A stretch of 55,680 nt of DNA, taken from contig NW_027592387.1 of assembly GCF_964213995.1 (NCBI RefSeq), positions 1 through 55,680 of the forward strand. Reading direction: 5' to 3'. Positions 9,273 through 55,680 of the stretch are shown here, piece after piece. The DNA comes from Mustelus asterias (taxonomy: Eukaryota). Made by a program: the position numbers and the translations under genes. Positions within the stretch are counted from its first letter, which is position 1; every line of letters begins with the position of its first letter. The notes under the pieces are model-generated. The model was given only the letters and a program-made list of their open reading frames with translations. It had not been told where the DNA came from and did no database searches.

Positions 9273-9499
9273 GGTGCAGGTGTCCTTGCCTCTCCCTTGG
9301 GTGGCCAATCAGTTGACGCCTTGTCCACACACAGAACACGGGTACAGTCTCTCCCTGCTGTGAATGGTGTGATATTTATTCAGGCTGTGTAACTGGTTAA
9401 AGCTCTTTAGTCAGGGCACTGGAACACTCTCACTCGGGTGTGGCAGTGTGTTGCTGCTTTTCCACTCACTGATGGCCGAAGTCTTTTCAAATCGAAGTG

Positions 9500-9960: not shown

Positions 9961-10052
9961 GGAGTGGGGGAGGGGACTTTGCAAAATCTCTTCCCATCAT
10001 TTTCTTCCCAGTCCCGCAGTTTGATTTGAAACAGAACAGCTTCTGTTTGTAG

Positions 10053-14679: not shown

Positions 14680-15022
14680 GGGCGGCACGGTAGCACAGTG
14701 GTTAGCACTGCTGCTTCACAGCTCCAGGGTCCCAGGTTCGATTCCCGGCTCGGGTCACTGTCTGTGTGGAGTTTGCACATTCTCCTCGTGTCTGCGTGGG
14801 TTTCCTGTGGGTGCTCCGGTTTCCTCCCACAGTCCAAAGATGTGCGGGTTAGGTTGATTGGCCAGGTTAAAAATTGCCCCTTAGAGTCCAGAGATGCGTA
14901 GGTTAGAGGGATTAGCAAGTAAAATATGTGGGGGTAGGGCCTGGATGGGATTGTGGTCGGTGCAGACTCGATGGGCCGAATGGCCTCCTTCTGCACTGTA
15001 GGGTTTCTATGATTCTATGATT
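14680..15022 (+). mobile_element. Full-length tRNA-derived SINE (HE1/V-SINE-like)
   Basis: A box TAGCACAGTGG, B box GGTTCGATTCC, central GTGTGGAGTTTGCACATTCTCC, CR1-like 3' end with (ATTCTATG)n tail; 24-bp flanking duplication 14613-14636/15017-15040. Confidence 0.9.
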
Positions 15023-16500
15023 CAGTCCTGCATGGGATTAGCAGCAACAGCAGAATCCAATCCCTGCAGTGACTTGTGAACTTGCTGGTGTCTCAGCAGA
15101 TTGGCTGACCGAGCAAATCTCTTCCCACATACGGAGCAGGTGAACGATCTCTCTCCCGTGTGAATCTGCTGGTGTCTCAGCAGGTGGGATGACTGAGTGA
15201 ACCTTTTCCCACACACGGAGCAGGTGAATGATCTCTCTCCAGTGTGAATTTGCTGGTGTCTCAGCAGGTCCTTAGTGCTTTTAAAACTCTTCTCACAGTC
15301 AGAACACTTAAACGGTCTCTGATCAGTGTGGACCAGTTGATGTGCAATGAGCTGGGGTGGCTGAGTGAATCGTTTCCCACATGTGGAGCAAGTGAAGGGT
15401 TTCTCCCCAGAGTGAATTCGCTCGTGTATCAGAAGCTGGGCTGAATCAGTGAATCCCTTCCCACACACACAGCAAATGAATGGTTTCTCCCCGGTGTGAA
15501 CTCGCTGGTGTCTCAGACAGTGGGATGAATGGGTGAATCCCATCCCACACACCGAGCAGGTGAACGGTTTCTCCCCAGTGTGAACTCGCTGGTGTCTCAG
15601 ACAGTGGGATGAATGGGTGAATCCCATCCCACACACCGAGCAGGTGAACGGTTTCTCCCCAGTGTGAACTCGCTGGTGTCTCAGACGGTGGGATGAATGG
15701 GTGAATCCCATCCCACACACCGAGCAGGTGAACGGTTTCTCCCCAGTGTGAACTCGCTGGTGTGTCACCAAATCCTGTTTCCTTTTAAAGCTCTTCTCTC
15801 AGTCAGAACACTGAAATGGCCTCTTATCAGAGTGAACTCGCTGGTGTGTTTGCAGCTGGGATAAACGTCCGAATCTCCTCTCACACACGGAGCAGGTGAA
15901 TGGCTTCTCCCCAGTGTGAGTGCGCTGATGGACTTGTAAATCATTTTTACTTTTAAATCTCTTCTCACAGTCAGAACATTGAAATGGTCTCTGATCAGTG
16001 TGAACAAGTTGGTGTGTCAGAAGGTGGGATGACTGAGTGAATCCCTTCCCACACACTGAGCAGGAGAACGGTCTCACCACCATGTGAGTGCGCTGGTGTC
16101 TCAGGAGGTCCTTTGTGCTTTTAAAGCTTTTCTCACAATCAGAACACTGAAACAGTCTCTGATCGGAGTGAACCTGCCGGTGAATCAGGAGGCTTGATAA
16201 AGCATGACATCCCCTCCCACATTCGAGGCAGGTGAATGGCCTCTCACCAGTGTGAACACGCCGGTGTGTATAGAGGCTGGATGAGTAAGCAAATCCTTTC
16301 CCACACTCAGAGCAGGTGAACGGCCTCTCTCCAGTGTGAACACGACGATGAATATCCAATTCGGACGGGTAATTGAATCCCCTCCCACAGTCCCCACATT
16401 TCAATGGTTTCTCTGTGGAGCCGGTGTCCTCGTGTGACTCCAGGTTGGATGATGAGTTGAAGCCTCGTTTACACAGAATATGTGTCGGGTCACTACTCAC
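15022..16500 (-). pseudogene. C2H2 zinc-finger gene B: 16 fingers, in-frame TGA (Cys codon) at 15799-15801 in finger 8, no clear ATG
   Basis: ORFs 15799-16500 and 15022-15771 are in the same frame; family start MEKP reads TEKP; family splice acceptor TTTTGCAG with exon starting at 16762. Confidence 0.8.
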
Positions 16501-19074: not shown

Positions 19075-21096
19075 ATGGCGAAACCATGGAAATGTGCGGA
19101 CTGTGGGAAGGGATACGGAACCCCATCAGAGCTGGAAGCTCATCGGCGCAGCCACACTGGGGAGAGGCCGTTCATCTGCTCTCAATGTGGGAAGGGATTC
19201 AGTCAGTTATCCAACCTGCAGAGACACCAGCGAGTTCACACTGGGGAGAGGCCGTTCACCTGCTCTCAGTGTGGGGAGGGATTCACTCAGTCATCCCACC
19301 TGCAGAGACACCAGCGAGTTCACACTGGGGAAAGGCCCTTCACCTGCTCTCAGTGTGGGAAGGGATTCACTCGGATATCCAGCCTGCAGAGACACCAGCG
19401 AGTTCACACTGGAGAGAGGCCGTTCACTTGCTCTCAGTGTGAGAAGGAATTCACTTATTTATCCACCCTGCAGTCACACCAGCGAGTTCACACTGGGGAG
19501 AGGCCGTTCACCTGCTCTCAGTGTGGGGAGGGATTCACTCGGTCATCCCACCTGCAGTCACACCAGCGAGTTCACACTGGAGAGAGGCCGTTCACCTGTT
19601 CTCAATGTGGGGAGGGATTCACTCAGTCATCCCACCTGCAGATACACCAGCGAGTTCACACTGGGGAGAGGCCGTTCACCTGCTCTCAGTGTGGGGATGG
19701 ATTCATTCAGTCATCCCACCTGCAGAGACACCAGCGAGTTCACACTGGAGAGAGGCCATTTACCTGCTCTCAGTGTGGTAAGAGGTTCACTCAGTTATCC
19801 AGCCTGCAGAGACACCAGCGAGCTCACACTGGGGAGAGGCCATTCACCTGCTCTCAGTGTGGGAAGGGATTCATTCAGTTATCCGAGCTGCGGACACACT
19901 AGCGAGTTCATACAGGGGAGAGGCCATTCACTTGCTCTCAGTGTGGGGAGGGATTCACTCGGTCATCCAGCCTGCTGACACACCAGCGAATTCACACTGG
20001 GGAGAGGCCGTTCACCTGCTCTCAGTGTGGGAAGGGATTCAATCAGTTATCCAACCTGCAGGCACACCAGCGAGTTCACACTGGGGAGAGGCCGTTCACC
20101 TGCTCTCAGTGTGGGAAGGGATTCACTCGGTCATCCGACCTGCGGGCACACCAGCGAGTTCACACTGGGGAGAAGCCCCCATTCACCTGCTCTCAGTGTG
20201 GGAAGGGATTCACTCGGTCATCCCACCTGCAGAGACATCAGCGAGTTCACACTGGGGAGAGACCGTTCACCTGCTCTCAATGTGAGAAGGGATTCACTCT
20301 GTCATCCCACTTGCAGACACATCAGCGAGTTCACACTGGAGAGAGACCATTCACCTGCTCTCAGTGTGCGAAGGGATTCATTCAGTTATCCAGCCTGCAG
20401 AGACACCAGCGAGTTCACACTGGAGAGAGGCCATTCACCTGCTCTCAGTGTGGGAAGGGATTCACTCAGTTATCCAGCCTGCAGACACACCAGCGAGTTC
20501 ACACTGGGGAAAGGCCGTTCACCTGCTCTCAGTGTGGGAAGGGATTCACTCGGTCAACCCATCTGCGGACACACCAGCGAGTTCACACTGGAGAGAGGCC
20601 GTTCACCTGCCCTCAGTGTGGGAAGGGATTCACTCGGTTATCCAGCCTGCAGACACACCAGCGAGTTCACACTGGGGAGAGACCATTCACCTGCTCTCAG
20701 TGTGGGAAGGGATTCACTCGGTCATCCGACCTGCGGACACACCAGCGAGTTCACACAGGGGAGAAACCATTCACCTGCTCTCAGTGTGGGCAGGGATTCA
20801 CTCAGTCATCCAGCCTGCGGGTGCACCAGCGAGTCCACACAGGGGAGAGGCCGTTCACCTGCTCTCAGTGTGGGAAGGGATTCACTCAGCTATCCAACCT
20901 GCAAACACACCAGCGAGTTCACACGGGGGAGAGGCCGTTCACCTGCTCTCAGTGCGGGCAAGAATTCACTCAGTTATCCAACCTGCAGACGCACGAGCGA
21001 GTTCACAATGGGGAGAGGCCGTTCACCTGCTCTGTGTGTGGGAAGGGTTTCAGCGTTTCATCCCGGCTGCTGAGGCACCAGCAAGTTCACAAGTGA
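19075..21096 (+). CDS. C2H2 zinc-finger gene C: 24 fingers in one frame with a single in-frame TAG (19900-19902) in finger 10; truncated gene or pseudogene
   Basis: ORFs 19075-19902 and 20311-21096 share a frame; CAG>TAG; extra Pro codon at ~20176; family acceptor TTTTACAG with exon starting at 18724. Confidence 0.85.
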
Positions 21097-21333: not shown

Positions 21334-22399
21334 AGAAAATAGAGGTTGGCAGTGCAAAGGTACATTTCTGAATGGAGGGCTGTGACAAGTGACATTCCTC
21401 AGGGTTCAGTGCTGGGACTTTTGCTGTTTGTAATATATCTATAAATGATTTGGAGGAAAATGTAACTGGTTTGATTGGTAAGTTTGTGGACAACACAAAG
21501 GTTGGTGGAATTGCGGATAGCGATGGGGAACGGCAGAGGATACAGCAGGATATAGATCAGTTGGAGACTTGGGCGAAGAGATGGCAGATGAAGTTTAATC
21601 CGGACAAATGTGAGGTAATGCATTTTGGAAGGTCTAATACAGATGGGAAATATACAGTAAATGGCAGAACCCTTAAGAGTATTCATAGGCAGAGGGATCT
21701 GGGTGTACAGGTACACAGGTCATTGAAAGTGGCAATGCAGGTGGAGAAGATAATCAAGAAGGCATACGGCATGCGGGCCTTCATTGGCTGGGGCATTGAG
21801 TTTAAAAATTGGCAAGTCATGTTGCAGCTTTATAGAACCTTAGTTTGACCGCACTTGGAATCTAGTGTTCAATTCTGGTCACCACACTACTAGAAGAATG
21901 TGGAGGCTTTGGAGAGGGTACGGAAAATATTTATCAGGATGTTGCCTGGTGTGGAGGGCATTAGCTATGAGGAGAGTTTGGAGAAACTTGGTCTGTTCTC
22001 ACTGGAACGACGGAGGTTGAGGGGAGACCTGATAGAAGTCTCCAAGATTATGAGGGGCATGGACAGAGTGGATAGTCAGAAGCTTTTTCCCAGGGTGGAA
22101 GAGTCAATTACGAGGGGCATAGGTTTAAGGTGCGAGGGGCAAGGTTTAAAGGAGATGTACAAGGCAGGTTTTTTACACAGAGGGTGGTGGGTGCCTGGAA
22201 CTTGTTGCCGGGGGAGGTAGTGGAAGCAGATACGATAGTGACTTTTAAGATGTGTCTTGACAAATATATGAATAGCATAGGAATAGAGGGATATGGTCCC
22301 TGGAAGGGTAGGGGTTTTAGTTCAGACGGGCAGCATGGTTGCTACAGGCTTGGAGGGCCGAAGGGCTTGTTTCTGTGCTGTAATTTTCTTTGTTCTTTG
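21334..22399 (+). mobile_element. 5'-truncated CR1 LINE inserted 3' of gene C
   Basis: KFVDNTK, FNPDKCEVMHFG, LERVRK motifs, TTCTTTG tail; absent from the paralogous flank of gene A (~8020-8035). Confidence 0.95.
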
Positions 22400-23191
22400 T
22401 TCTGTTTGGAACATCCCAAATGCCCATCCAATTTCCTTTTTAATTGTTTATTGTCTCCACTTCGTCCACCCTCATAGACAGCGAGTTTCAGGTCATTACC
22501 ATTCACTGCATCAGAATATTCTTCCTCACATCTCCCCCCTCAATTCCCCCCCCACCCCACTGCCCCCCCCCCCCAGCCCCCCACTCCCCCTCCCTTGCAT
22601 CTCTAACCCAAAACAAGAAATCTGTGTCCCCCCTCGTCCTAGTCCCATCAGCTAATGGGAACAGCTTTTCTTTGTCCACCTTATCTAAACCTGTCAGAAT
22701 CTTGTCCACCTCTATCAAATCTCCCCTCAACCTCCTTTGCTCCAAGGAAAACAACCCCAGCCTGACATTGACAATAAAGAACAAACTAACAGAATATGTT
22801 AATACCTGAAATCAAATGGGAATGTTTAATTTCTGTTTTAAAGATATTGTGAATGTATTGTCCTGGACAATAAAGGAATTGGAATAACACACCTTGGGTG
22901 TGGTTGAATGGAATATGTCAATCTGATATCCACCTACAGTCCAGTGAAAGTCTGGAATGTGTAGCTGGAAGTCCCTTCCTAACAGCACTGTGGATGTACG
23001 TGCACCTCAGGCATTGCAGCAGTTCATGAAGGCACCCTTGGGGTTGGGGTTGACCATGGCCAAGGCAGCTCCATACAGCCACATATTCTGTTATAATTGA
23101 AGGACTGCAGATTGAATGTGAGGCATTGGGGGACTGGACTATCTTGACCACATTCCTGTGACTGCCCGGAAAGTCTTGTGTCTATTTTAAA

Positions 23192-24246
23192 GCACAAAGA
23201 ACAGTACAGCACAGGAACAGGCCCTTCGGCCCTCCAAGCCTGCACCGATCATGTGTTCCTAACGAGACCATCCGTTTGTATCCCTCTATTCCCAGTCTGT
23301 TCATGTGGTTATCTAGATAAGTCTTAAATGATCCTAGCATGTCTGCCTCAACCACCTTGCTTGGTAGTGCATTCCAGGCCCCCACCACCCTCTGTGTAAA
23401 ATACGTCCCCCGCATATCTGTATTGAACCTTGCCCCCCTTATCTTGAACTTGTGACCCCTTGTGTTTGTTCTTTCTGACCTGGGAAAAAGCTTCCAACTG
23501 TTCACCCTATCTATGCCCTTCATAATTTTATAAACTTCTATTAGGTCGCCCTCAACCTCTGTTTTTCCAGGGAGAAAAACCCTAGTTTACTCAATCTCTC
23601 CTCATAGCTAATACCCTCCATACCAGGCAACATCCTGGTAAACCTTTTCTGCACTCTCTCCAAAGCCTCCACGTCCTTCTGGGAGTGTGGCGACCAGAAC
23701 TGGACGCAGTATTCCAAATGTGGCCGAACCAACGTTCTATATAACTGCAACATCATATGCCAACTTTTATACTCTATGCCCCTTCCAATAAAAGCAAGAA
23801 TGCCATATGCCTACTTCACCACCCTTTCCACCTGTGTTGCCACCTTTAAGGTTCTGTGGACTTGCACATCCAGATCCTTCTGCGTGTCTATACTCCTGAT
23901 GGTTCTGCCATTTATTGTATAGCTCCCCCCCCTGCATTAGATCTACCAAAATGCATCACTTCGCATTTATCTGGATTAAATTCCATCTGCCATTTCTCCG
24001 CCCAATTTTCCAGCCTATCTATATCCTGCTGTATTCTCTGACAATGTTCATCACTATCCGCAACTCCAGCAATCTTTGTGTCATCCGCAAACTTACTAGT
24101 CAGACCAGCTACATCTTCTTCCAAATCATTTATATATATCACAAACAGTAGAGGTCCCAGTGCAGAGCCCTGCGGAACACCACTCGTCACAGACCTCCAA
24201 TCAGAAAAAGACCCCTCCGCTGCTACCCTCTGTCTTCTATGGCCAA
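23192..24246 (-). mobile_element. 5'-truncated CR1 LINE
   Basis: GVPQGSALGPLLF, KFADDTK, LERVQKRFTRM in minus ORFs; 3' tail at ~23192. Confidence 0.95.
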
Positions 24247-24900
24247 GTAAGAAGTTTAACAACACCAGGTTAAAGTCCAACAGGTTTATTTGGGAGCAAA
24301 AGCCACACAAGCTTTCGGAGCTCTTAGCCCCTTCTTCAGGTGAGTGGGAATTCTGTTCACAAACAGAGCATATAAAGACACAGACTCAATTTACTTGAAT
24401 AATGGTTGGAATGCGAATACTTACAACTAATCAAGTCTTTAAGAAACGAAACAATGTGAGTGGAGAGAGCATCAAGACAGGCTAAAAAGATGTGTATTGT
24501 CTCCAGACAAGACAGCCAGTGAAACTCTGCAGGTCCACGCAACTGTGGGAGTTACAAATAGTGTGACATGAACCCAATATCCCGGTTGAGGCCGTCCTCG
24601 TGTGTGCGGAACTTGGCTATCAGCTTCTGCTCAGCGACTCTGCGCTGTTGTGTGTCGTGAAGGCCGCCTTGGAGAACGCTTACCCGAATATCAGAGGCCG
24701 AATGCCCGTGACCGCTGAAGTGCTCCCCAACAGGTAGAGAACAGTCTTGCCTGGTGATTGTCGAGCGGTGTTCATTCATCCGTTGTCGCAGCGTCTGCAT
24801 AGTTTCCCCAATGTACCATGTCTCGGGACATCCTTTCTTGCAGCGTATCAGGTAGACAACGTCTACAACCTGATGCAAGAAAGGATGTCCCGAGGCATGG
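24247..24900 (-). mobile_element. Penelope-like retroelement 3' part: GIY-YIG endonuclease C-terminus, 3' UTR/pLTR, fold-back 5' end
   Basis: VVYLIRCKKGCPETWYIGET..LRQRMNEH..VGEHF...EQKLI..FRT..DGLN (ORF 24552-24962); inverted repeat ~24816-24900. Confidence 0.92.
24306..24342 (-). ncRNA. Minimal hammerhead ribozyme motif in Penelope pLTR
   Basis: CAC-CTGAAGA-A-GGGGC-TAAGA-GCTCC-GAAA-GCTT-GTG. Confidence 0.7.
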
Positions 24901-27305: not shown

Positions 27306-28003
27306 AAAGTCAGATTTAGAAAATAAATATTTGAACCTGGTTGTAAACAGCCTGCTTCAGCACCAGAGTGGGATGGTGTCAGTGTCCACGGGGTGGAGTT
27401 TGTAGCGTGGACTGAAGACAATCCTTTCATGTTTCTCACTCTTTAAATGGAGGAAACTTTTCCTCATCCAGGACAGGATCTCAGTCCAGTCGGGATGCTG
27501 TGTGACTTTGAGGTGATGATGTTCACATTCACCTGTGAACCTGGTCTTTCTAAATGGTGGAGGTTGAGGGTTTGGGAGTTTCTGTCTGGTTGTAGATGTA
27601 TCCACTCCTTCACCTCTTCTCCTCCCACATCTCTTAATCCCGCCCATCCGCTGCCTCTTCACATTGAAGCTCTGGTCTTGTATAGGTTCAGACTGGCTCA
27701 AAGGTTCCCTTCCCTGAAGGACATTAGTGAACCAGTTGGGTTTTTATGACAATCCATCAGTTTTCTTGGTCTCTTTTTCCCAGTGCTGGCCCCACAAATG
27801 ACCAGATTCATTCAGCTCCATTTCACAACCTGCCTTTGTGTTTTTGTGTGTTCTCTCTCACTCTCTTTTTTTCTTTTTTAAATCAATTTCACAGCATATT
27901 CAAAGGTGAGGATTTGCAGTCGGAAAACTGAAACCAAACATCACATCAGGATCAGACAGAGTCGCCCAATTTATCGTAATATGCGTATCATTGGATTTTG
28001 AAC

Positions 28004-28849
28004 ATGGAAGGAAAAAGCACCGCTCACAGTGGGGAGAAACTGTACACGTGTTCCGTGTGTGGACGGGGATTCAGCCGTTTATCTGGCCTGTCAAAACATA
28101 AATGCAGTCACAACGGGGAGAAATTGTGGAAATGTGAGTATTGTGGCAAGGGATTCAGTTCCCCATCAGAGCTGGAAATTCATCGACGGTGTCACACTGG
28201 GGAGAGACCGTTCACCTGCTCCGAGTGTGGGAAAGGATTCACTCAGTTGTCCCACCTAGTGAGACACCAGCGAGTTCACACTGGGGAGAGACCATTCACC
28301 TGCTCTGTGTGCAAGGTGGGATTCACTCAGTCAGCCCACCTGGTGTCACACCAGCGAGTTCACACTGGGGAGAGACCTTTCACCTGCTCCGAGTGCAAAA
28401 TGGGATTCACTCAGTCAGCCCACCTGGTGTCACACCAGCGAGTTCACACTGGGGAGAGACCATTCACCTGCTCCGAGTGTGGGAAGAAATTCAGCCGGTC
28501 GTTTCACCTTCTGATTCACCAGCGAATTCACTCTGGAGAGAGACCATTCACCTGCTCTGAGTGTGAGAAGGCATTCATTACATCAACCGAACTGTTGACA
28601 CACCAGCGGATTCACACTGAGGATAACCCGTTCACCTGCTCCAAATGTGGGAAGGAATTCGCTAACTCTTCTAACCTGATCTGCCATCAACGAATTCACA
28701 CTGACGAGAGACCTTTTAAATGCCCAGACTGTGGAAAGTGCTTTAAAAGTTTTGGGAACTTGATGACCCATCAACGGGTTCACACTCGAGTCCGTTCAGA
28801 TGCTTTCACTGTGGGACTGAGTTCAGACAATCATCTCCTCTCACTGTAA
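28004..28849 (+). CDS. C2H2 zinc-finger gene D: 9 fingers, then frameshift at ~28787-28791 and two decayed fingers to ~28940
   Basis: [19 protein letters not shown]... with HTGERPF linkers; acceptor TTTCACAG with exon starting at 27895. Confidence 0.85.
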
Positions 28850-30611
28850 ACCAGCGAGTTCACACTGGGGAGAAACCATTCATCTGCTTCAAGTGTGGGA
28901 AAGGATTCAATCAGTCATCCAACGTGCTGACACACCAGCCAGATTGGAGTTTGCTGTTAATCACATCCAGAACTGAACTATATTTATTGGGGTCTGATGT
29001 TAACAATATCCAGTGCAGATTTAGATATTAGTATTCTGGGTTAAAAATAAAATAAAAAATCAACTTTGTTTTAATTTTTGAATGACTGCATCTTCATTTG
29101 GGAGGCTGGGATTATCCCCGTTTCGAGGGAACTAAGGAATAGACCATAAGCCGTAGGAGCAGCATTCGGCCATTCAGCCTTCATTATAACAATGATCTCA
29201 TTGTGATTCCTGCTGGTTGGGAAATGTGCGATATTAATGCCAGTCTGTCTTTCTTTAATTATCTTCAATCCCAGTCCTCTGGTTACTGACCCGCATCAGT
29301 GGAACAGTTTCTCCCGATCTGCTCTATCAAACCACCCGTCCCCACCCCCATAATCTTGAACAGATCCATGAAATCTCCATTTTAGCTTCTTTGTTCTAAA
29401 GGGAACACATTTGGGGGAGGCGATGCCTAATGGTATTATCGATAGACTATTAATCCAGAAACCCAGCTAATGTTCTGGGGACCCGGATTCGAATCCACAT
29501 TTTGAAAAAGATGAACAGTGTCTGTGGTTTACAGTGAGAGGAGATGATTGTCTGAACTCAGTCCCACAGCGAAAGCATCTGAACAGGTGGTGCAGCACAT
29601 TTCCCAGGACATTGGAGCAGTAATGAATGAGGCCAGGATGACAGAGTCGAAACAACATTATATTCTTTATGCTTGAAACCTGTCTTAGAATTCTCTTCAT
29701 TAACTGGACCATCAATGTGAGGGGAATTAGCATCTTCTGTAATTCCAGAACCAAGAGACACTGATTCCCCAGGGATGTTGTTCTGTAATTTACACTATCC
29801 CCCAGCAGGGCTCTTCACCCAGGCTGACAACAGGCAGCTCAGTGTTCGTGATTTGTCATTGCTGCTGTTCCAGATGTTGTTCAATGTAGACTCAAGTTTA
29901 GAGAAAGGAGTGGAAATGGGTCATCAGAACTCTCACTGTCCCTGACGGGTAATGATTACTTGAATTTCTCAAACATTGTGGTTTGTAAAGACACTGTTAT
30001 TTCATCTCCAGTATTAGTCAGAATGGGCTGTATTCTCCACATGATAGGGCTGGAATTATCTGTGTGGGTGTGTGTCTATGAATGAAGATGTCTGTCTGGG
30101 TGTGGGTGTGTGTCTATGTTTGCCCATATCTGTGTAAGAGACAGGGAGAGAGAGTGTGTTTGGATCTCTGTGTTTGGATATCTTTATGTGCTGCTCCTTC
30201 TTAGGTGGTTTGTCTCAAAGGTTCCTCTCCGGGTGATTTGAGTAGAATCATTCAGAGATTCTTCATCCTGGGTGAATCCACAGGCTGACCATGTGCTGTG
30301 TAAAACCTGACATCCACACCACCAGACTCCACTTTTCCTGGAACAACATCAAATGTTTGCTGCTTTCCTGATCCTTCCTTTTCCCTCCCTTTTCAATTCT
30401 ATCACTTCTCATGATTCTGAATTTCAGAGAGGACAGACTCATCCCACTGAATGTCCTCCAAGGACAACCGCCTCATCTCAGGAATCAGTCCAGTGAAATT
30501 TAGTTGCACAAAGACAGTGAGCAAATAGAACAAAGACCAAAAGAGGGAAATAGATAGAGACACAGACAGAGGCTGTTCGAGTGAAAGAGACTGAGCAAGA
30601 GTTACAGTCAG

Positions 30612-35206: not shown

Positions 35207-35342
35207 CTGTAAAAGAAAGATACAATAATGAAGCAGTTGTTTATGATGCGGGATATTAAAGTTAGAGTTTTTAATGGAACATTGAGAGATTTTTCAAGTC
35301 CATTCTGTCAGTTTGATATGTGAGTGCATTCAATCATCTCAC

Positions 35343-35470
35343 CTTCACCAGAGTGACCGCAGTGCTGTAGAAAATGCTCAGGAAGAACAGGACAATGAAT
35401 GTGGAAGCCGTTGTCCAGATGTTACTGTTATCATCCTCATTGTCTTCAATCCAGATGCGGTCGGTGGAGT
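35343..35470 (-). CDS. IGHM: IgM TM1 exon
   Basis: AG/GT bounded; DSTDRIWIEDNEDDNSNIWTTASTFIVLFFLSIFYSTAVTLVK contains the conserved antigen-receptor TM motif. Confidence 0.95.
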
Positions 35471-38626: not shown

Positions 38627-39018
38627 TCATTGACATGAATTAACGGTGTCCATCAGTGCAAGGGAAATGTTCACAAAACTGGGTTTACCGCTGGATTTGT
38701 CAACTGTTCTGTTGATGATCTTCAAGGGGATGGCTTCATGTCCCACCACACAGGAGTAAGAAGCGCCGCTGGACCACTCCTCTGCTGCAATGGATAACAG
38801 GCTGTACATGAAGAAGGAGCTATTCCCGCTCTCCGCGACCACCTCGGTGTTCTTATAGTTCCCAGGATTCACCGGCTTGTCGTTGACGGTCCACTTGACG
38901 AAGATCTCTCGAGGGGAGAAACGTCTCACTAAGCAGCTGAGGGAGACGAATCTCTGAGCGGAGACTTCTTCTGCCGAGGGCAGGAGGACAGAGACGAACG
39001 GTTCCCGCGGATTTGGAT
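38627..39018 (-). CDS. IGHM: IgM CH4 exon plus secretory tailpiece; internal donor after 38689 for TM splicing
   Basis: [43 protein letters not shown]...[24 protein letters not shown]|GTAAA; tail [19 protein letters not shown] with NIS glycosylation site and penultimate Cys. Confidence 0.97.
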
Positions 39019-39520: not shown

Positions 39521-39829
39521 CTGTTTCCTTGTGGATGGATTTTCTTAAAGGAGTCGGCAGATCCTGATGGCTCACCACGCAGTCAAACACAGCCGCACTC
39601 AGCCAGGCTTGTGTCGAGATGTTTAAGTTGCTGACCACGCTGTCAGGATCCGCTCCAGGCTTTTCGGCGATCTCTGATTTCAAATACTTCCTGTCTCGGA
39701 TCCAGGACACGTTGACTCCATAAGGAGCATTAGAAATGATGCAGGTTAAGGTCACGGTCGCCTCCAGTAAGACCTGTTCTCTTGGTGGTGGCTGTATCGT
39801 CACTGTGGTATCAGGGCACTGGGGAGGAT
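39521..39829 (-). CDS. IGHM: IgM CH3 exon
   Basis: AG/GT phase-1 bounded, 309 nt; LTCIIS..W...[14 protein letters not shown]1-set domain. Confidence 0.97.
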
Positions 39830-40749: not shown

Positions 40750-41061
40750 CCAGAGATCCGCTGATGTTCTGACTCTGGGTGAATCCTTGATGAGTGACCT
40801 GGCAGGTATAGACTACTTTGCTGAACCATTCCTGAGCGGAGACTGTCAGCCGACTGCTGGCCGAGAAGTTCCCGTTCACTTCACAGGCGGGAGAGGTGAT
40901 AATTCCTGAATCCATGGGTTGTCCATTCTTCAGCCACTTCACCGTCATTGACTTTGGCTGGAAATCCATGATTGAACAGACGATGGTTGCAAATTTTCTG
41001 CTGGTGATTTCTTCACTGGAACTCACGGTGAGGATAACGGTTGGGGGGAGAACGCGTGGGC
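40750..41061 (-). CDS. IGHM: IgM CH2 exon
   Basis: 312 nt, phase 1; [23 protein letters not shown]...YTCQVTH. Confidence 0.97.
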
Positions 41062-42034: not shown

Positions 42035-42334
42035 ATTGCATTCCAATGCTCTTGACCGAGCTGCTGTGTCGAACCTCACACTTGATTTTGCTGCACTCTC
42101 CCTCTGACTGGGTGATGGTTAACTGGCTGCTCAAGGTGTAGGTTCCCTTCGCGTTTCTCACTGATGGATAAGTCTTAAATCCAGTGTCGATCAGCTGCCC
42201 ATTTTTCTTCCAGGTCAGTTTGGAGACATCTGGAGAGTAGTCCATCGCCAAACAGCCGTAGGTGATGGAGCCAGCGGAGTTGTGTTGCTGACAGGAAGAG
42301 ACGAGGCTGTAGAGAGTGGGCGGAGACGGTGTCG
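42035..42334 (-). CDS. IGHM: IgM CH1 exon
   Basis: 300 nt, phase 1; [17 protein letters not shown]...[21 protein letters not shown]...CEVRH, with the light-chain-bonding Cys near the N-terminus. Confidence 0.97.
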
Positions 42335-42990: not shown

Positions 42991-43314
42991 GTTTTGGATA
43001 TTGCCTGTGTACAAACTAGCTGATGCCCCTTCCTCTCTCCAACTCACTGCCTCTCACTCCACAAAACGAAGATTAGTGACTTTGCTTCAAAACTACCTTC
43101 GGAATGAATACTTACTGAATGACCAGGAAACTCTCAATGTGATTACAAATTCAAATAATTGCAACATTGACTAACTGAAGGGTCAGACATTAATAGCAAG
43201 AGTTGGCCATTCGGGCCCTGAAGTCTCCTCCATTATTCACTGAGATTACAGATGATCTGGTTGTGGTGCTCGCTCTATTTTGCACATCCTCACTCCGCCC
43301 GTCGATCACCCACT

Positions 43315-43990
43315 CTCTGCCCATTTTCCCCGACTCTGTGCCCTTTCCCCTGGCTCTCTGCTATTCCCTGTGGCTCTTTTCCCCTTTCACCCGGCTCTCC
43401 GCACTTCCACCTGGCTCTCTACACTTCCCTCCAGCTCTGTGCCCTCTCCCCCGGCTATCTGCCCTTTCCCTCAGCTCCCTACCCTTTCCCCCGGATCTCT
43501 GCCCTTTCCCCTGGCTCTCTGCCCTTTCCCCTGGCTCTCTGCCCTTTCCCCCTGACTCTCTGCCCTTTCCCCTGCGTTCTCTTGCCCTTTCCCCTGGCTC
43601 TCTGTCCTTTCCCCTGGCTCTCTGCCCTTTCCCCCTGACTCTCTGCCCTTTCCCCTGCGTTCTCTTGCCCTTTTCCTAGGCTCTCTGTCGTTTCGCCGGC
43701 GTCCCTGCCCTTATTCCTGGCTCTCTCCCCTTTCCCTGGTCTCTCTGCCCTTTCCTCCGTCTCTCTGCCCTTTTCCCTGGTTCTTTGCCTTTCACCTGGC
43801 TCCCTGCCCTTTCTCCTAGCTCTCTGCCCTTTCCCCCGGCTCTCTGCCCTGTTGCCCGGCTGTGTGCCCTTTCCCCAGGCTCTCTGCCCTCCCCCCCCCC
43901 CCCCCACCCCCTGCTCTCTGCCCTTTAGCACGCCTCCTGTTCTCCCCGGCTCTTTGCCATTGTCCCTGGCTCTGAGCCCCCAGGGATTCC
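43315..43990. repeat. ~20-bp pyrimidine/purine-skewed minisatellite in the J-C intron
   Basis: Unit CTCTCTGCCCTTTCCCCTGG; long C run ~43891-43905. Confidence 0.95.
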
Positions 43991-44089
43991 CTCCAGCTCT
44001 CTGCATTCCCAGGGCAGCTCCCACATTTGAACACCAAACTGCCGCTTGAGATCTTTCTTCTCTCTCTTTGCAGACCTCCTCACACAGAT

Positions 44090-45630
44090 TTAGTGAGGGT
44101 GAGTGAGAGAATGTGAGTGCGTGAGGGGGACTGATTGAAGGAGTGAGAGTGGATGAGTGATGGTGTGTGAGTGACAGAGAGTTCATAAGTGAGGGTGAGT
44201 GAATGAAGTTCTTTGAGTGAGGATGAGTGATTGAGGGTGAGTGAGTAAGTGTGGGTGAGGGTGAGAGGGCGTGAGTAAATGAGGGTGTGTGAGAGAGGGG
44301 GGATGTGAGTGAAGGTGGCTGAATGGGTGAGTGAAGGTGGGTGAGTGAATGTCAGTGAGCGAGAATGAATGAATGAGGGTGAGTGAGTGAGGATGCATGA
44401 AGGTTAGCGAAGGTGGGTGAGTGAGAGCGAGTGAATGAGGGTGAGGGAATGAATATGACTTAGTAAGTGAGGGTGAGAGAGTGAGTAAGTCAGGGTGTGT
44501 CATTGGGGGTGGTGTGAGAGAGTGTGTGAGGGAGAATGAATGCGGATGGGTGGGTGAGTGAGGATGAGTGAGTGAAGGTGTTTGAGTGAGGATGAGTGAT
44601 TGAGGATCTGTGAGTTAGGGTGGGTGAAGTTGAGTGATGGTGAGTACGTGAGGGTGTGTGAGTGAATGTCGGTGCGTGAGTCTGAGTGAGTTTGAATGGG
44701 TCAGGTGGCGTAAGTGAAAGAGAGAGGATGATTGAGCTTGAGTGTGTGGGGGTGAGTCTGGGTGAGTGAGGGTCGGTAAGTGGGGAGAGTGAGTGAGGGT
44801 GAGTGAGAGTGAGTGAGACTGGATGAGTGAGGGTGGGTAAGTGCGGTGAGTGAGTGAGAGTGAGTGAGACTGTGTGAGTGAGGATGGGTAAGTAGGGTGA
44901 GTGAATGAGGGTGAGTATGGGTGTTGGTGAGTGACTGAGGCTCTGAGTGAGTGACTGAGGGTCAGTGAGTGAGGTTGAGTGTGTGATGGTGTGAGTGTGG
45001 GTGGGTGGCTGACTGACAGTGCGTGAATGAGGGTGAGTAAATGAGGGTGTCTGAGGGTGAGTGAGTGCGAGTGAGTGAATGCGGGTGGGTGAGTGAGGGT
45101 GTGAGAGTGAGTGAATGAGGGTGAGTGAATGTGAGTGAGTAAGTGAGGGTGTGAGGATGAGTGATTCAGGATGTGTGATTGAGGTTGAATGAGTGAGGTT
45201 GAGTGAGGGTGTGTGAGTGAGTGTGGGTGAGTGAGTGAGGATGGGTGAGAGTGAGTGAGCGAATGTTTGTGAGTGATTGTGAGTGAGTGAGGGTGTGAGG
45301 GTGAGTGACTCAGGGTGAATGAGGATCAGTGAGTTTCTGAGGGTGAGTGTGTGAGGGTGAGTACGTGAGGTTGAGTGTGTGAGGTTGAGTGTGTGAGGCT
45401 CAGTGTGTGAGGTTGAGTGTGTGAAGGTGAGTGTGTGAGGGTGTGTGTGAGGGTGTTAGGTTGGATGAGTGAGCAAGGGAGAGTGAGTGGGGATGAGTGA
45501 GTGGGGATGAGTGAGTGAGAGTGTGTCAGCGAGGGAAGTTGGGTAAGTGAGGGTGAGTGAGTGAAGTTCTTTGAGTGAGGATGAGAGATTGAGGGTGAGT
45601 GAGGAAGTGTGGGCGGGGGTGAGAGAGTCA
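44090..45630. repeat. Degenerate (GTGA/GAGG)n tract in the J-C intron
   Basis: GTGAGTGAGGGTGAG repeats; ~55-bp block at ~44189 repeated at ~45547. Confidence 0.95.
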
Positions 45631-46225
45631 GTGGGCCACGTCCTCCTCTTCCTCTCCATCGATCTTTTCCCGATTGTCTACATTGATCAGCTTTCTGTAA
45701 CAGGGCTGTGTAAAGTCAGGCAGCAGTGTAGATCACCGGGCAGCTGCTTTAATGTCGGTGCCTTTCTTTAAGAAACACGTATCAGTTAACAAATAGACAG
45801 ACTGAGGGAGCTGGAAGGGAAGCTTACAGCGAAACCAGAATGGGTCGCACAGGAATCAAACAGCAAGTTTACACCAGTATTGGGGAGCCAGGCGGCCTTG
45901 GTCTCAGCCAAGTCCCTTCTTACTTATTGTGTCTTTCTGTCCGGTGTAACACATGGAAATCTCTACTTCTGACCTCATGTTGGATGGAATGTCTTTGATG
46001 AAGCAGTAGAAGATTGTTGGTCCCAGGACAATCCCCTGCCGAACTTTTGCAGTGAAATCTGAACTTAGATGTTTGACCTCCAACAACCAACACCATCTTG
46101 CTTTGTGCTAAGTATGACTCCGAACAGAGAAGAATTTCCCGCCGATTCTTACTGACTTGAGTTTTACTCGGGCTCCTCGATCCCATCCTCATTCAAATGC
46201 TACCGGGGGGTTGGGGGGCGGGGGG

Positions 46226-46525
46226 TGGCACGGTGATTAGCACTGCTGCCTCACAGTTCGATTCCCGACTTGGCTCATTGTCTGTGTGGAGTTTGCAAGT
46301 TCACCCCGTGTCTGTTTGGGTTTCCTTCGGGTGCTCCTGTTTCCTCCCACATTCCAAAGATGTGCGGGTTCGATGGATTGGCCGTGCTAAATTGCCCCTT
46401 AGTGTCAGAGGGACTAGTTAGGGTAAATACATGTGGTTATGTGGATAGGGCTTTGGTGGGATTGCTGTTGGTGCAGACTCGATGGGCTGAATGGCCCCCT
46501 TCTGCACTGTAGGATCCTATGCTTC
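46226..46525 (+). mobile_element. HE1-like SINE with internal deletions
   Basis: Aligns with 14680-15020. Confidence 0.85.
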
Positions 46526-46559
46526 TATTTATGATGTCAAGGACAATCACTCTGACTAT

Positions 46560-48455
46560 GTGAGATGGAAAGTGTGTGAGGGTGTTTGGATGTGTGAGAG
46601 AGAGAGAGAGGGTGGATGTATGTGTGAGGGTGCCTGTGTGTGATAGACTGTGTTTGCACGTGTGTGATACAGTGGGCTGTGTGTGCAAGAGGGGAGAGTG
46701 TGCGTGAGAGAAAGGGTGTGTGAGATAACGTGTGTGAGAGAGAGAATGTGTGATTGGAAAGTTATTCTTGGTGTGTGAGAGTGTGTCTCTTCTTGAAAGA
46801 GTGTGTGTGGGCAGTCTGTGTGAGAGAGTACTTCGGTGTGTGATTGAGTGTGTGTTTATGTGAAAAGGAGTGTGTCTATATGAGATACACGGTATCTATG
46901 AAAGATAGTGTGTGTGCTTGAGGGAGGGTGTGTGTGTGTGTGTGGGAGAGAGTGTTGTGTTCATGTGAAAGACAGTGTGTGTGAGAGGGAGTGCCTATTG
47001 GAAAGCAAATTAATATGTTCATGAGTGTGTGAAAGTGTGCATGGGATTGTGTGTGAGTGAGAAAGATATGCGCAATGTGTGTGGGTGATAGAAGCAATGT
47101 GTTTGAGTGTGTGTGTGTGTGTGCGTGTGTCTGTGTGTCTGTGTGTGTGTGTGTGTGTGTGCGTATGTGAGACAGAGAGAGAGAATTTTTGTGCGAGAGA
47201 GACGTTGTGTATGGTTTATGTGTGTTAGAGTGTCAGACACATGAGTGTTTTGCACGTGTTTGAGAAAGTGGTCTGTGTGTACAAGAGGAGAGAGTGCGCG
47301 TGAGAGAAAGGATATGTGAGATAGAGAATGCGTGTGTGCGAGAGACAGTGTGTGTTTCAAGAGTTATTTTTTATGTGTGTGAGAGTATTTTTCTGTTCTT
47401 CAAAGTATATGTGTGTGCGTGTGCGTGCGTGGAGGGGCGGGGAGAGTGTGTGTGAGTGAGAAAAACTGTGAACATTAGACAGAGTGGATGCGTGAGTGTG
47501 TGTGAGTGAAATAACGGTTGCGAGAACATGTGTCTGTGATAAGTGGCGTGTTTAAGAGAGATACATTGTGTATACATGTGTGTTCATGTGTGAGAGACGG
47601 AGAGACTGTGTGCGTGTGAGAGAGAGAGGGTGTTTGTGAGATACAGAGTTTGAGAGCGAGATTGTGCGTGTGTGAGACAATGTGTAAGGGAGTGAGCGTG
47701 TGAAAGAGAGAGAAAAATGTGCCTGTGTGAGAGAATGCGTGTGCAAGTGTCCGTATGAGAGAGAGAGCGAGCATGCAAATGAGTGTGAGATGGAGTGAGA
47801 GCACGGAAGAGGGAATGTGAGAGGGATAGTGCATGTGTGTGTGTGTGAGGGAAAATGTGTGCGCGAGACTGTGCTTATGTGAGAGACTGTGTCTGTGCGG
47901 AAGAGTGTGTGTTAGAGTGCGTGCGTGAGTCTTTGCTTGTGAGAGAGTGTTTGTGAGAGAGCCAGTGTGTGAGAGCAAGAATGTACAGGTGTGAGATAGT
48001 GTGTGCAAGAGATATAGAAATATATGCGTGTGCTTGAGAGAGAGAGAGAGATGCGTGTGTGCAAGAGGAATTGTGAGAGCGTGTGTGAATAAATGTGAGA
48101 CAGCTTGAGCGTGTGTGACAGAGTGTGGGAGAGAGAATGCATGTGAGAGTGCGTATGCGAGAGTGTGAGACTGTGCTTATGTGAGAGTGTGTGGCTGTGC
48201 GTAAGAGAGAATGTGTGTCGGGGGTGTGCGTGTGAGTGCTTTTGTGTATGGTGGTATGAGAGACTGATTGAGAGAGCGAGAGTATGTATGTATTTGTATT
48301 TGAGAGAGTTTATGTGAGAGAGAGAATGTGTATGGGCGTGTGAGAGAGATCGGATGAGAGAGAAAGTAAGTGTGAATATGTATGTGGGCATGTGTGAGAG
48401 ACTATGAGAATGTGTATGTGTGTATTTATGTGTGTGAGAGTGTGTGATGTGTGCA
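46560..48455. repeat. Degenerate (TG)n/(GA)n tract
   Basis: Low-complexity TG/AG sequence. Confidence 0.9.
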
Positions 48456-51400: not shown

Positions 51401-53333
51401 TGCGACTTCACTGAAAAAAAATGTAAAAATCGGATACCAAAATTGCCAAAAAGAAACGTCTTATTGTGCAAAACACGTATTCCAGTGAATGCGAACTAAT
51501 CTGGGATATAACGATTAATGCAAAGTATCTTGTTGAATTGAGCGCTGCGGTGGAAACAGCATGTTATCATTGAAGTCATTTCTGGAATTATCAATAAATA
51601 TTTCCAGTCTGGAAAATTTTCTGGTCATGTTAGTGAAAAGCACAACAGAACTATTAAAGGGGATTAATGCTAAATTATATTAATATAAAATAATCTTAGG
51701 TGAATATGGAGTTATATTACCGATTAATAATTGTTTGGTTTATATTAACTTTGCAATTAAACTTGTTAATGAGAAGTTTGTGTTTGCAGCAACGACTTAG
51801 TTTCCGAATGAGCATTGTAAGTCATGATTTTTCGATAAAAGTCGAAAGGTTACTTTAATTTGTCAGCATTAGTTAACATTTATAAAAATGCTGTGATATC
51901 TTTATTTTAGTTTCTTTCCAAAACCTGCTCGTTTTCTCCCTCCAAGGATTTTCAAACTCAAAGATTGTTTGCATTCAACCAGAAAACGTCTAACCACTCA
52001 GTGCCACCGAGCTAAAACAATGCAGAAATAATGCCGAAACACCAAACCATTTCACAAATTTTAAACATTCATAGTGGCCGAACCAGAGTCTCCTCAACAG
52101 AAACACACGAAAACACATCCATGAGGGAATGAATCCATTTCACGGAGAAGCAGCTCAATTATCCATTCAACAGAACATTGCAAGAAAATCTCAATGTCGA
52201 ATCTAGCAAACGAGCTCTTAACCAACTATTAAACTGAACAGAAATCTAGTACAATAGCAATAGCATTGCGAGGTGGTGGAATGTGTCCAACAAATTAGTA
52301 TTGAAACTTTATCACATTTAATTCATATTGGGTCATGTATCAAACATATTTAAACATTTGGATGGTAAAAGCTCCAGCCATCAAACGTCTCCGAGATTTA
52401 GCATTGCAGGTACCCCAAATTGCGAATGCAGTGACAAACTATGTTCTGAACGAGTGGCATAAACCGTACTTTAGTTGAACCTGCAATTATCACTTAAGAT
52501 TTTAAAAATACAAACAGAATAAAGCCTGCCTGATTTCTGCCTGTAGTCATGCGTCAAGCAGTTGCAAACCCGCAGACTGTTCGTATTCAATCACAAAGCG
52601 TGTAACAGCTCAGTCTCACCGAGGGTTTAAGCAATGCAGAAACAATGCAGAAACACCCAACTATTTCACAAACTTTACTTATTTAAAGTCATCCAGATAC
52701 ATAATCTCCTCACCAGAAAAAACGCATCACTGAGAAGCTGAACCCCGCTTCCTGCAGAAGCAGCTCAATTCTACAAACACTTTCAACAGATTCAAATGTA
52801 ACATTGACAGAAATTTTTAATATAAATTCCAGCCAATCCGCCCATCACCAAAGTAATTAATGTTTAAAATAAGCAGAAATATTGCCTAGCATCACCAGCA
52901 CTGCTAGTGAGTGGAACATGTTCACTGGATTAATATAGACATTTTAGAACTTTTTAAAAATATAGGCTTAGATTTCAAACACTTGTGCAGTAGATGGTAC
53001 AACCCGCAGCCACTAGATGTCACCGAGATTAAACATGACCGAAACGCTGAATTGTTTAACAGACGTCAGGCTTTTAAAGTAACCCAGCCACACAGTAGCC
53101 TCAAAAGATAAACACAAAATCACAATAATTAGGGATTGAATCCCTCAGCAGCACCGATTGTCAAGAAACAGCAGAATTCTAGAACCCCTTTGCAGCAGAA
53201 TCACAGGAAACATTGTAAAAATTCTCAATCCACCAAACCCACATTTAAGTAAACAAATGGATGTTTAGTATAGACAAAAATATAAAACAAAGACACATGT
53301 AAACCAATTATTCAATAAGTGCATTGCTCTTAC

Positions 53334-53381
53334 CTGCAGTCACCGTCACCATGGTACCTTGTCCCCAGTAGTCGAAGTAGT
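53334..53381 (-). CDS. IGHJ: JH segment YFDYWGQGTMVTVTA
   Basis: WGxG motif and phase-1 donor G|GTAAG. Confidence 0.98.
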
Positions 53382-53420
53382 CACAGTGTCACATTCCCTG
53401 GGCTGTGTCGTACAATAACC
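53382..53420 (+). other. JH 23-RSS
   Basis: CACAGTG 53382-53388, 23-bp spacer, ACAATAACC 53412-53420. Confidence 0.97.
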
Positions 53421-53744
53421 GTCCCTGCACAAAATAGATACAAAATCACCATTATTTTAAATATTCACAAACCAGAGGAAAAGCAAAGTCAATTAATGTT
53501 CATTAAATTATAATTGTATTTCTGGATACTATTCTCCATTCATAACTGACCCTAATATTTTATACTTCACAGAGGAATACAGGAACATGTTATTGAAAAC
53601 ACCAACTGATAACTGAGTAATTATCAGATTTTCCATTTTCATTCTTATCATGTGGTCAGTGCTGGACATAAATAATACTGTATTGTGATTAAAGTTGGAA
53701 TTTAAAAGTGACACTGATCCAGCCTCAATCAATTAGTGCTGAGG

Positions 53745-53812
53745 GGTTTTTGCATTGACAGTAAATGTTGTGCCACCCAGTTATCACAGTGAGACACAGC
53801 ATGACAAATACT
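53745..53812 (-). other. IGHD: DH segment (D2) ATAACTGGGTGG at 53773-53784 with 12-RSS on both sides
   Basis: V-side RSS CACAGTG 53785-53791, 12 bp, ACAAATACT; J-side RSS CACAACA 53772-53766, 12 bp, GCAAAAACC. Confidence 0.93.
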
Positions 53813-54122
53813 GCGGCAGACTGTTAACTGTAAAATGCAGATAGGTCATTTCACTGCTATTTCAAAAGCCTGTTTCAATGTCGTTTAAGAGTGAGTCAGT
53901 GAGATATTTCAATTTTTACTGGTCATGAGATTGATAAAGGGGATTAGAAACTTTTACACTCTCCGTGCACATTCAGCATGTAAATCAATAACAATAAAGT
54001 TGAAGTATTTTATATCTTTTAAAAAACAATGCTGCTTCTACCTATTATTTTGTCTATTCCTCATTCTGTTTAGCATTCGGCAGTGGCACTGATCACATAT
54101 TTAAGCAAAGTCTTTCCTCTGA

Positions 54123-54160
54123 GGTTTTTGTATGAGGATGTCGCTATGCTCAGCACTGTG
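54123..54160 (-). other. RSS with 22-bp spacer following the VD join
   Basis: CACAGTG-CTGAGCATAGCGACATCCTCAT-ACAAAAACC. Confidence 0.97.
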
Positions 54161-54472
54161 ACCCACTGCTGTAGTATGCACAGTAATAGATGGCGGTGTC
54201 TTCAGTCTTCAGGCTCTTCATGTCCAAAACGAAGATGCTCTTTGAAATGTCTTTGGACGCAGTAAATCGATTCTTAATTGCTGGGGCGTAGTTGCCGGAT
54301 GAAGTATAGTAGCTGACCAGCCACTCCAGGCCCTGCCCGGGAACCTGCCGGATCCAACCCATGTAGTAGCTGCTGAGATCGAAGCCGCTGGTTTTACAGG
54401 TCAGTTTCAGGGAGCCTCCGGGACGCCCGGTCTCTGCCTCTGGCTGAGTCAACACAACCTGCGTCTGGACAC
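54161..54472 (-). CDS. IGHV: VH exon fused in frame to D1-like segment (54161-54176)
   Basis: [52 protein letters not shown]...EDTAIYYCA then YYSSG (TACTACAGCAGTGGGT); acceptor TTTTACAG. Confidence 0.96.
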
Positions 54473-54596
54473 CTGTAAAAGTAGATCAAAAAACCCGAGG
54501 ATTAATCCTGGTGTGATGATTTTTTACTCTGGAATATGGACTAACACTGAGACAGTAACAGTGAGAGAATTGGACAATGAAAAAAAAACTACTCAC

Positions 54597-54642
54597 CGGA
54601 TAAGAAAGTCAGCAACAAACTGAGAGAAATCGCCGACCTCAT
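54597..54642 (-). CDS. IGHV: VH leader exon MRSAISLSLLLTFLS
   Basis: ATG at 54642, 46 nt, donor GTGAGT, 124-bp intron. Confidence 0.95.
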
Positions 54643-54724
54643 CCTTCTGGTAAATTGGGGGAAATAGTTGTGTCAGGAACTCAGTGAACAAACCAGCTCC
54701 CGGACTGTAGGATTCCGGTCCCAG

Positions 54725-54820
54725 TGAGCGGTATTTAAATACCCGCCAGAAGGGGGCGGCTTTCCAGGCGCCGCCTGTTGATTCCCTGCTGGAGGCGGCG
54801 ACAGGATCCAGGTCCCACCT
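54725..54820 (-). promoter_or_regulatory. VH promoter: TATA-like TTTAAATA within palindrome GGTATTTAAATACC (54730-54743), GC-rich upstream, no octamer
   Basis: ~90 bp upstream of the ATG; no ATGCAAAT/ATTTGCAT seen between 54642 and the window end. Confidence 0.65.
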
Positions 54821-55680
54821 TCCACACCCGCAACAGAATGGAGTCCCAGATTTACAATAGGTTAATATTAAAATGGCCATTTTATCTGTATCGGGATATT
54901 TGTTTGGCTGATTATGTTCATTGTATTGTCTCCATTATTTCTGATGGTGATATTGCAGTTCATCATTTCTTTATTTAAAATAACTAATTCCATTGTAAAT
55001 ATGGTGATTTTATTACCACGCCCCCAAGAAGAACACAAATCTAAAAATGATGAAATAACATTTTTGGAAAATAAAGAGACCGTCAGTCTATTTTGCAACA
55101 ATTCCGGGTCTCTGTCACATCACAATAATAAAACATCATTTATCAGAATAATTTTTACCGATTCCTGTAACTAAATGAGGGGGTATGAACAAAGTGATTG
55201 CATTTACAGTGCGGATGGCTATCACTGTACAATTTGGGTTTGGAGATGAGAAGAAACTCTCACACAATACAATGTTTCTCCTTATATTTGTCAAACTGCC
55301 CCAATCTCGAAGACAGCCCTTTGAAAATGATAAGAATCCTGCCCTCCTGATAATTAAATAGTGAGTTGACAGAGAAACATAAAATTAACCTCGACTTTTG
55401 ACAGAGAAGTTAATGAATGGAACGGACACGGAGATCATTAAAGTTCTCCTTCAGCATCCAGATCATTGCAGGTCACTCTATCGGCCACCGGCTGTCTAAC
55501 ATTCGCTGGTATTGCGAACACAAGATATCAGGGCTTTGCGGCACATTGCACAATATCACAAGAATAAATGTTTTATCTTCCATTGAATCAGGTTATGAAC
55601 TGATCATTTCTCCACTTATTGGCAGCTATGATTGGAACTCTTCAATAACAGGAATCAGATTATACTGTACAATAGAATAG

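Follow-up and report, generated by a model that had tools for sequence, protein, structure and literature searches.

Partly joined heavy-chain clusters of sharks are textbook knowledge, and the locus described here raises the question of how a cluster with its V segment already fused to D1 came about: which letters were joined and by what agent, whether such a gene could still be completed and used, and whether the fusion belongs to the germline or to a lymphocyte. Shark and skate heavy-chain clusters have been described as unjoined, partly joined (VD-J, VD-DJ) or fully joined (VDJ), and joined shark Ig genes have been attributed to RAG acting in germ cells, both as stated in PMC5192425, PMC4279169 and PMC2193156.

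The window, i.e. the whole stretch of DNA that was analysed (55,680 nucleotides from Mustelus asterias, contig NW_027592387.1), holds a full IgM heavy-chain minilocus of the cluster type seen in sharks, in the configuration VD1 - D2 - J - Cmu1-4 - TM. Its parts all lie on the minus strand within about 20 kb, running from 54642 to approximately 35337, and comprise a leader and V-set exon, a J segment with a WGxG motif, four C1-set Cmu exons, a secretory tail and a membrane exon. A second Ig cluster was sought across the whole window and none was found. Protein searches, which were run exon by exon and not on a joined or spliced model, gave P0001 of Chiloscyllium punctatum as the closest relative of V (83% identical), and by these comparisons the nearest protein relatives of the cluster are orectolobiform. 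The two-D layout, with a 23-RSS at V, 12 and 22 at D1, 12 and 12 at D2 and 23 at J, is not what we found: there is a single free D, and D1 exists in this cluster solely as 13-16 fused nucleotides together with its 3' RSS. The 5' part of the cluster reads as follows.

54732..54741, minus strand: TATA-like element, read by eye, with the ATG of the leader following some 90 nt downstream.
54597..54642, minus strand: leader exon, MRSAISLSLLLTFLS plus 1 nt, resembling the leader of P0002 (Heterodontus HV01), with a GTGAGT donor next to it.
54473..54596, minus strand: leader intron, 124 nt, GT...AG, from sequence reading.
54177..54472, minus strand: V part of the V exon, to TGTGCA (Cys-Ala), from translation; Pfam V-set, E 5e-17.
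54174..54176, minus strand: junction letters TAC, three letters attributable to neither V nor D1, as set by the limits of the contig matches.
54161..54173, minus strand: D1-derived coding letters, 13 nt, with an untrimmed 3' end; the same 13 nt occur free in contigs of runs X1 and X2.
54123..54160, minus strand: D1 3' RSS, a perfect heptamer, 22-bp spacer and perfect nonamer, from the pattern search and a nurse-shark primer match.

The reading frame of the V exon stays open for 103 codons. V ends TAT TAC TGT GCA (54177) and is followed directly, and in frame, by 16 nt (54176-54161), after which come the heptamer CACAGTG (54160-54154), the 22-bp spacer and the nonamer ACAAAAACC, which ends at 54123. 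A search for the heptamer and nonamer separated by 11-24 letters gave this one match in the window, compared with 0.00 expected from 100 shuffles. The coding sequence of V is therefore continuous with that of a D segment, with both the V RSS and the D 5' RSS absent between them, as in a partly joined gene.

The identity of the fused letters was examined by comparison with relatives, for which four public runs (Logan contigs) were aligned to positions 52700-55680 at 88% likeness; the best run contains 0.38 of the sampled words, and 32 of 1154 pieces and 24 of 166 loose ends were listed. In two contigs of X1 and one of X2 (the latter having 255 loose letters), the match to the window comes from the side of the lower coordinates and stops at 54173; the contigs then go on, in plus-strand letters, as T, heptamer, 12 letters, nonamer. 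On the gene strand, this is a 12-RSS standing before one letter and the same 13 nt, indicating a free D1 in the relatives, and at the place of 54174 the letter of their free D1 differs. From the other side, three X2 contigs match V from 54177 up and carry before it 6 more coding letters, then a heptamer of the V type and a spacer; translated, the first part of this spacer resembles the tail that the bamboo-shark model P0001 shows by read-through (a comparison at the protein level only). Paralogous V segments ending in the same 16 nt were sought; the V contigs of X2 end instead with the V-type RSS. The strings of the relatives' V-RSS and D1 5' RSS were searched for in the window with as many as 3 mismatches allowed and gave 0 matches, which indicates that the two signals have been lost together with the interval that separated them. 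In addition, the nurse-shark primer 'RSS-D1', which targets 'sequence 3' of D1' according to PMC2435157, agrees with the spacer and nonamer in 16 of its 18 letters (54130-54147; 0.03 expected). A second match of this primer, at 30080-30097 with 3 mismatches, was taken as chance. The fused letters are homologous to free D1 segments, the paralogues coming from related runs and not from this genome, and on these comparisons the fused part is D1 and both RSSs have been lost. A sequence-only reading of this DNA had held that a VH ending TAT TAC TGT GCA, with a perfect heptamer, 22-bp spacer and nonamer after it, is fused in frame to D1, and had explained this as a V-to-D1 coding join; the former was confirmed on the minus strand by the V exon and the single RSS pattern match, and the latter is supported by the free D1 contigs, the V contigs ending at 54177 and the RSS-D1 primer.

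Compared with the relatives, V has lost approximately 6 nt and the 5' end of D1 0-1 nt, with the 3' end of D1 intact. For the junction letters TAC, three origins are conceivable: addition, slippage (the next three letters are the same) or a D1 variant that is longer. An origin as P nucleotides was rejected, as TAC is palindromic to neither coding end seen in the relatives' contigs. Of the 21 protein relatives 10 were compared, and eight of these reach the conserved Cys; in seven of the eight the second residue after it is Arg, and Ala-Tyr-Tyr occurs in none of them. After its Cys, P0003 reads Gly-Val-Tyr-Tyr-Ser, and this Tyr-Tyr-Ser, at the protein level only, hints at a longer D1 variant.

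Other joined forms were observed in passing. At the protein level, three gene models of other sharks look pre-joined: P0006 of the bamboo shark reads as V and D letters followed by read-through of a 12-RSS, P0008 of the whale shark runs from V through D to a J-like WGQ motif, and P0003 has the Tyr-Tyr-Ser given above. Two X1 contigs show a VDD-J form, in which a V like that of the window is joined to D1-/D2-like letters with the D2 3' RSS kept; their joints run from 53773 to 54176 (29 letters between) and from 53779 to 54177 (6 letters), and their V-D junctions differ from that of the window; they may be paralogues in the germline or else products of somatic joining or transcription. A metagenome scan with the 20-mer of D1 plus heptamer gave 0 stretches, and a scan of metagenome contigs with the V protein gave 193 pattern matches, none of which was confirmed.

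Could such a junction have arisen without RAG? Candidates are an ordinary deletion of approximately 400 bp or an unequal exchange, the wrong assembly of paralogous clusters into one, and a V whose long 3' end is ancestral. IgM clusters are many and alike, with 37 in a bamboo shark (PMC8692893), so that collapse or exchange between copies is conceivable, and the repeat formed by the three junction letters and the next three could be explained by slippage. Nevertheless, the breakpoints lie near coding/heptamer borders, the D1 3' end is untouched and the frame is kept, which together form the signature of a coding join, whereas a chimera would break within shared sequence and not at segment ends, and the relatives' free V segments are without these end letters; we regard a non-RAG origin as very improbable. 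As RAG is expected to cut at segment ends, the position of both breakpoints within a few nucleotides of coding/heptamer borders counts for a RAG join.

Our favoured explanation, which we hold to be probable, is that the VD1 - D2 - J - Cmu1-4 - TM minilocus arose by one germline RAG-type V-to-D1 coding join. Such a join would have removed the V 23-RSS, a V-D1 interval of approximately 400 bp and the D1 5' 12-RSS; it would have trimmed some 6 nt from the V end, added or kept 0-3 letters, and left D1 unchanged at its 3' end, the RSS with the 22-bp spacer included. The agent would be germ-line RAG activity, for which a case has been made in shark light-chain genes.

What would be left for recombination was then read from the segments between V and the constant exons.

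53785..53812, minus strand: D2 5' RSS, nonamer, 12-bp spacer and heptamer, from the RSS scan and reading.
53773..53784, minus strand: D2 coding segment, 12 nt, from sequence reading.
53745..53772, minus strand: D2 3' RSS, heptamer CACAACA (53766-53772), 12-bp spacer and nonamer GCAAAAACC, by eye.
53382..53420, minus strand: J RSS, nonamer, 23-bp spacer and heptamer, from the scan, with 0 mismatches in the heptamer and 1 in the nonamer.
53334..53381, minus strand: J segment YFDYWGQGTMVTVTA, then a GTAAGA donor, from sequence reading.

The nurse-shark JH2 primer matches J at 15 of 16 positions (53340-53355). The D2 3' heptamer CACAACA is 3/7 off consensus, with CAC retained, and fell under the threshold of the RSS scan; the remaining three RSSs of the cluster depart from consensus little or not at all. 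Over the whole window the scan returned 30 rows, four between V and J and 26 outside, and a weak match at 53568-53607 (1 mismatch in the heptamer, 3 in the nonamer) was set down to chance, being of the same quality as the 26 outside V-J. The remaining intervals, measured from nonamer to nonamer, are 310 and approximately 324 nt, which fits the nurse-shark segments, spaced 'about 400 bp apart' (PMC2435157); one such interval is missing, and this supports the V-D1 join.

The RSS of VD1, with its 22-bp spacer, would pair with the D2 5' RSS (12), and the D2 3' RSS (12) with the J RSS (23), so that under the 12/23 rule a direct join of VD1 to J is barred and D2 must be included. CDR3 would have its first half fixed as Cys-Ala-Tyr-Tyr-Ser, save for trimming at the D1 3' end, and diversity would arise only at the D1/D2 and D2/J joints. 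The untrimmed VD1 (from the Cys codon), D2 and J add up to 22+12+48 = 82 nt, i.e. 27 codons and the one J base passed on to Cmu1, indicating that the segments are mutually in frame; by our own reading, the untrimmed joined VD1-D2-J would be free of stops.

The constant exons lie approximately 11 kb beyond J.

42035..42334, minus strand: Cmu1, boundaries inferred from phase-1 AG/GT sites; C1-set, E 2.4e-14.
40750..41061, minus strand: Cmu2, inferred boundaries; C1-set, E 1.1e-19.
39521..39829, minus strand: Cmu3, inferred boundaries; C1-set, E 2.2e-9.
38627..39018, minus strand: Cmu4 with secretory tail and stop; C1-set, E 2.7e-21.
35337..35470, minus strand: membrane exon TM1, an open stretch with a hydrophobic segment and an AG acceptor at 35470; the 3' end is approximate.

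Each of the four Cmu exons has a phase-1 AG acceptor and each of Cmu1-3 a GT donor; Cmu4 has an internal GGTAAA donor at approximately 38689 for the membrane form, and its secretory tail ends Cys-Gln before the stop. A Pfam search of the TM1 exon gave no match. The sequence-only reading had also described one free 12/12 D and a 23-RSS J, and had called all C exons intact: the former layout holds, with the weak D2 3' heptamer as a caveat, and the latter stands at the level tested, that of four open C1-set stretches with splice sites, plus TM1.

Upstream of V, high-depth contigs from runs X2, X5 and X7 span positions 54602-54846 and differ from the window at 4-7 places, and the upstream 200 bp are approximately 96-97% like high-depth contigs of relatives, indicating that this is the usual upstream region of the gene family. 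No perfect octamer (the motif as commonly known) was found between 54650 and 55000. We also considered whether the gene belongs to the nurse-shark Group 2; the leader-intron primer 'Int' was without a match, so by that test the window is not Group 2.

These features bear on the possibility that the join is a germline one but the gene a silent relic, no longer rearranging or not expressed, in which case the 'semi-preset antibody' would be functionless. The weak D2 3' heptamer and the missing octamer point that way, none of the listed runs is recorded as RNA, and the joined heavy-chain genes of the horned shark were not found expressed, according to PMC2193156. On the other hand, all exons are open and have splice sites, the other three RSSs are well preserved and even the weak heptamer keeps its CAC, and the upstream region has the close likeness to high-depth relative contigs given above. 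We consider a silent relic possible, if rather doubtful, and infer a gene that would be competent for both rearrangement and expression.

Whether the join stands in the germline is a separate matter, as a one-step VD-D-J product of lymphocytes or thymocytes could have been captured by the assembler from an animal in which the germline cluster is an ordinary V-D1-D2-J. In the nurse shark, V-to-D1 is the favoured first somatic join and VD-D-J the commonest somatic one-step intermediate; 60% of Group 2 and 4 genes in thymus are rearranged, mostly to intermediates, and partial rearrangements, abundant in thymus, also occur in spleen and blood lymphocytes (PMC2435157). The Group 2 somatic VD-D-J intermediates described there share the configuration of our cluster, the V-to-D1-first order and a homologous D1 3' RSS flank; however, they are per-cell lymphoid products with unique junctions, whereas the present form comes from a genome assembly, and one clone would have to dominate the consensus. 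Among the 32 of 1154 pieces listed from the four runs, no contig bridges 54150-54200, and the most similar X2 cluster appears to have a free D1, both of which would suit somatic capture; contigs of this kind, however, can attest that a form exists but not that it is missing. Over the D1-D2 and D2-J flanks, the X2 contigs differ from the window at 3/258, 5/131, 13/505 and 12/208 positions (1-6%), which is too large for the same allele, and the free D1 there would be that of a paralogue or of another species. The window is, moreover, gap-free, without any N, and thymus is seldom the source tissue in genome projects. We therefore judge somatic capture to be unlikely and the V-D1 join to be likely a germline one, with RAG as the agent that we infer. 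As the closest X2 cluster is 1-6% different and has an apparent free D1, a germline join would be younger than that divergence.

A germline V-to-D1 join can be set beside several known systems. The joined IgM clusters of horned shark, skate and chimaera are likewise of the cluster type, with joins that lack intervening RSSs and other segments that keep theirs, but in the parts of the reviews available the forms named are VD-J, VD-DJ and VDJ, not VD-D-J, whereas here V-D1 only is closed and two steps are left. The nurse-shark IgM1gj and NS4 light-chain genes are germline-joined, with a pre-set CDR3 and mainly neonatal expression (PMC4279169 and PMC2193156); in these, however, every join is closed (VDJ or VJ) and RAG is not required, whereas the window cluster is only partly joined, and IgM1gj is described as being without Cmu2, whereas our cluster has all four Cmu exons. 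IgNAR2, 5 and 6 of the bamboo shark also show a partial germline join that leaves steps to be made, and have 22-bp-spacer RSSs (PMC8692893), but these are of another isotype with a D-to-D join, whereas here an IgM gene has a V-to-D join. A search for 'VD-D-J' with 'shark' in the open literature (subscription journals being outside its scope) yielded PMC2435157 only, where the term refers to somatic products.

The cluster adds a further example to the long-known pre-joined shark antibody genes, and the accepted picture is unchanged. If only V-D1 is closed, it would mark the first stage in the passage of shark antibody genes from split to fully joined. Very similar free V and D1 segments are at hand for comparison with its junction, whereas the heavy-chain joins of the horned shark were too divergent to dissect (PMC2193156), so this junction may show how germline joins are processed, i.e. 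with trimming, no P nucleotides and 0-3 added letters. The cluster also provides an easy way to learn whether the repertoire makes use of a half-preset CDR3, particularly in young animals. A bolder extension, which we put forward as speculative and rather unlikely, is that one-step VD1-D2-J germline joins have recurred independently here, V-to-D1 first as in somatic joining, so that pre-set genes with one to three joins would form a graded series, the one-step members of which would be expressed as a half-innate repertoire whose CDR3 has a fixed start.

Finally, the J-Cmu1 intron (11 kb) contains tandem arrays of period 20 at 43313-43890 and of period 14 at 44092-45603 (approximately 106 copies), which are strongly G-rich on the plus strand and hence C-rich on the coding strand of the gene, with GC skew at 44001-48000. 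The remainder of the window consists of zinc-finger genes and retroelement fragments: four C2H2 zinc-finger repeat arrays flank the Ig cluster, at 8370-9308 and 15022-16500 (both minus strand) and at 19075-21096 and 27998-28849 (both plus strand), and reverse-transcriptase/retroelement ORF fragments lie at 1486-3371, 21450-22220 and 23182-24310. At 11315-11698 there is a perfect tandem array, which in one ORF encodes over 20 repeats of a 5-residue unit, and it sits in a strongly strand-skewed stretch (GC skew -0.74 at 10001-12000).
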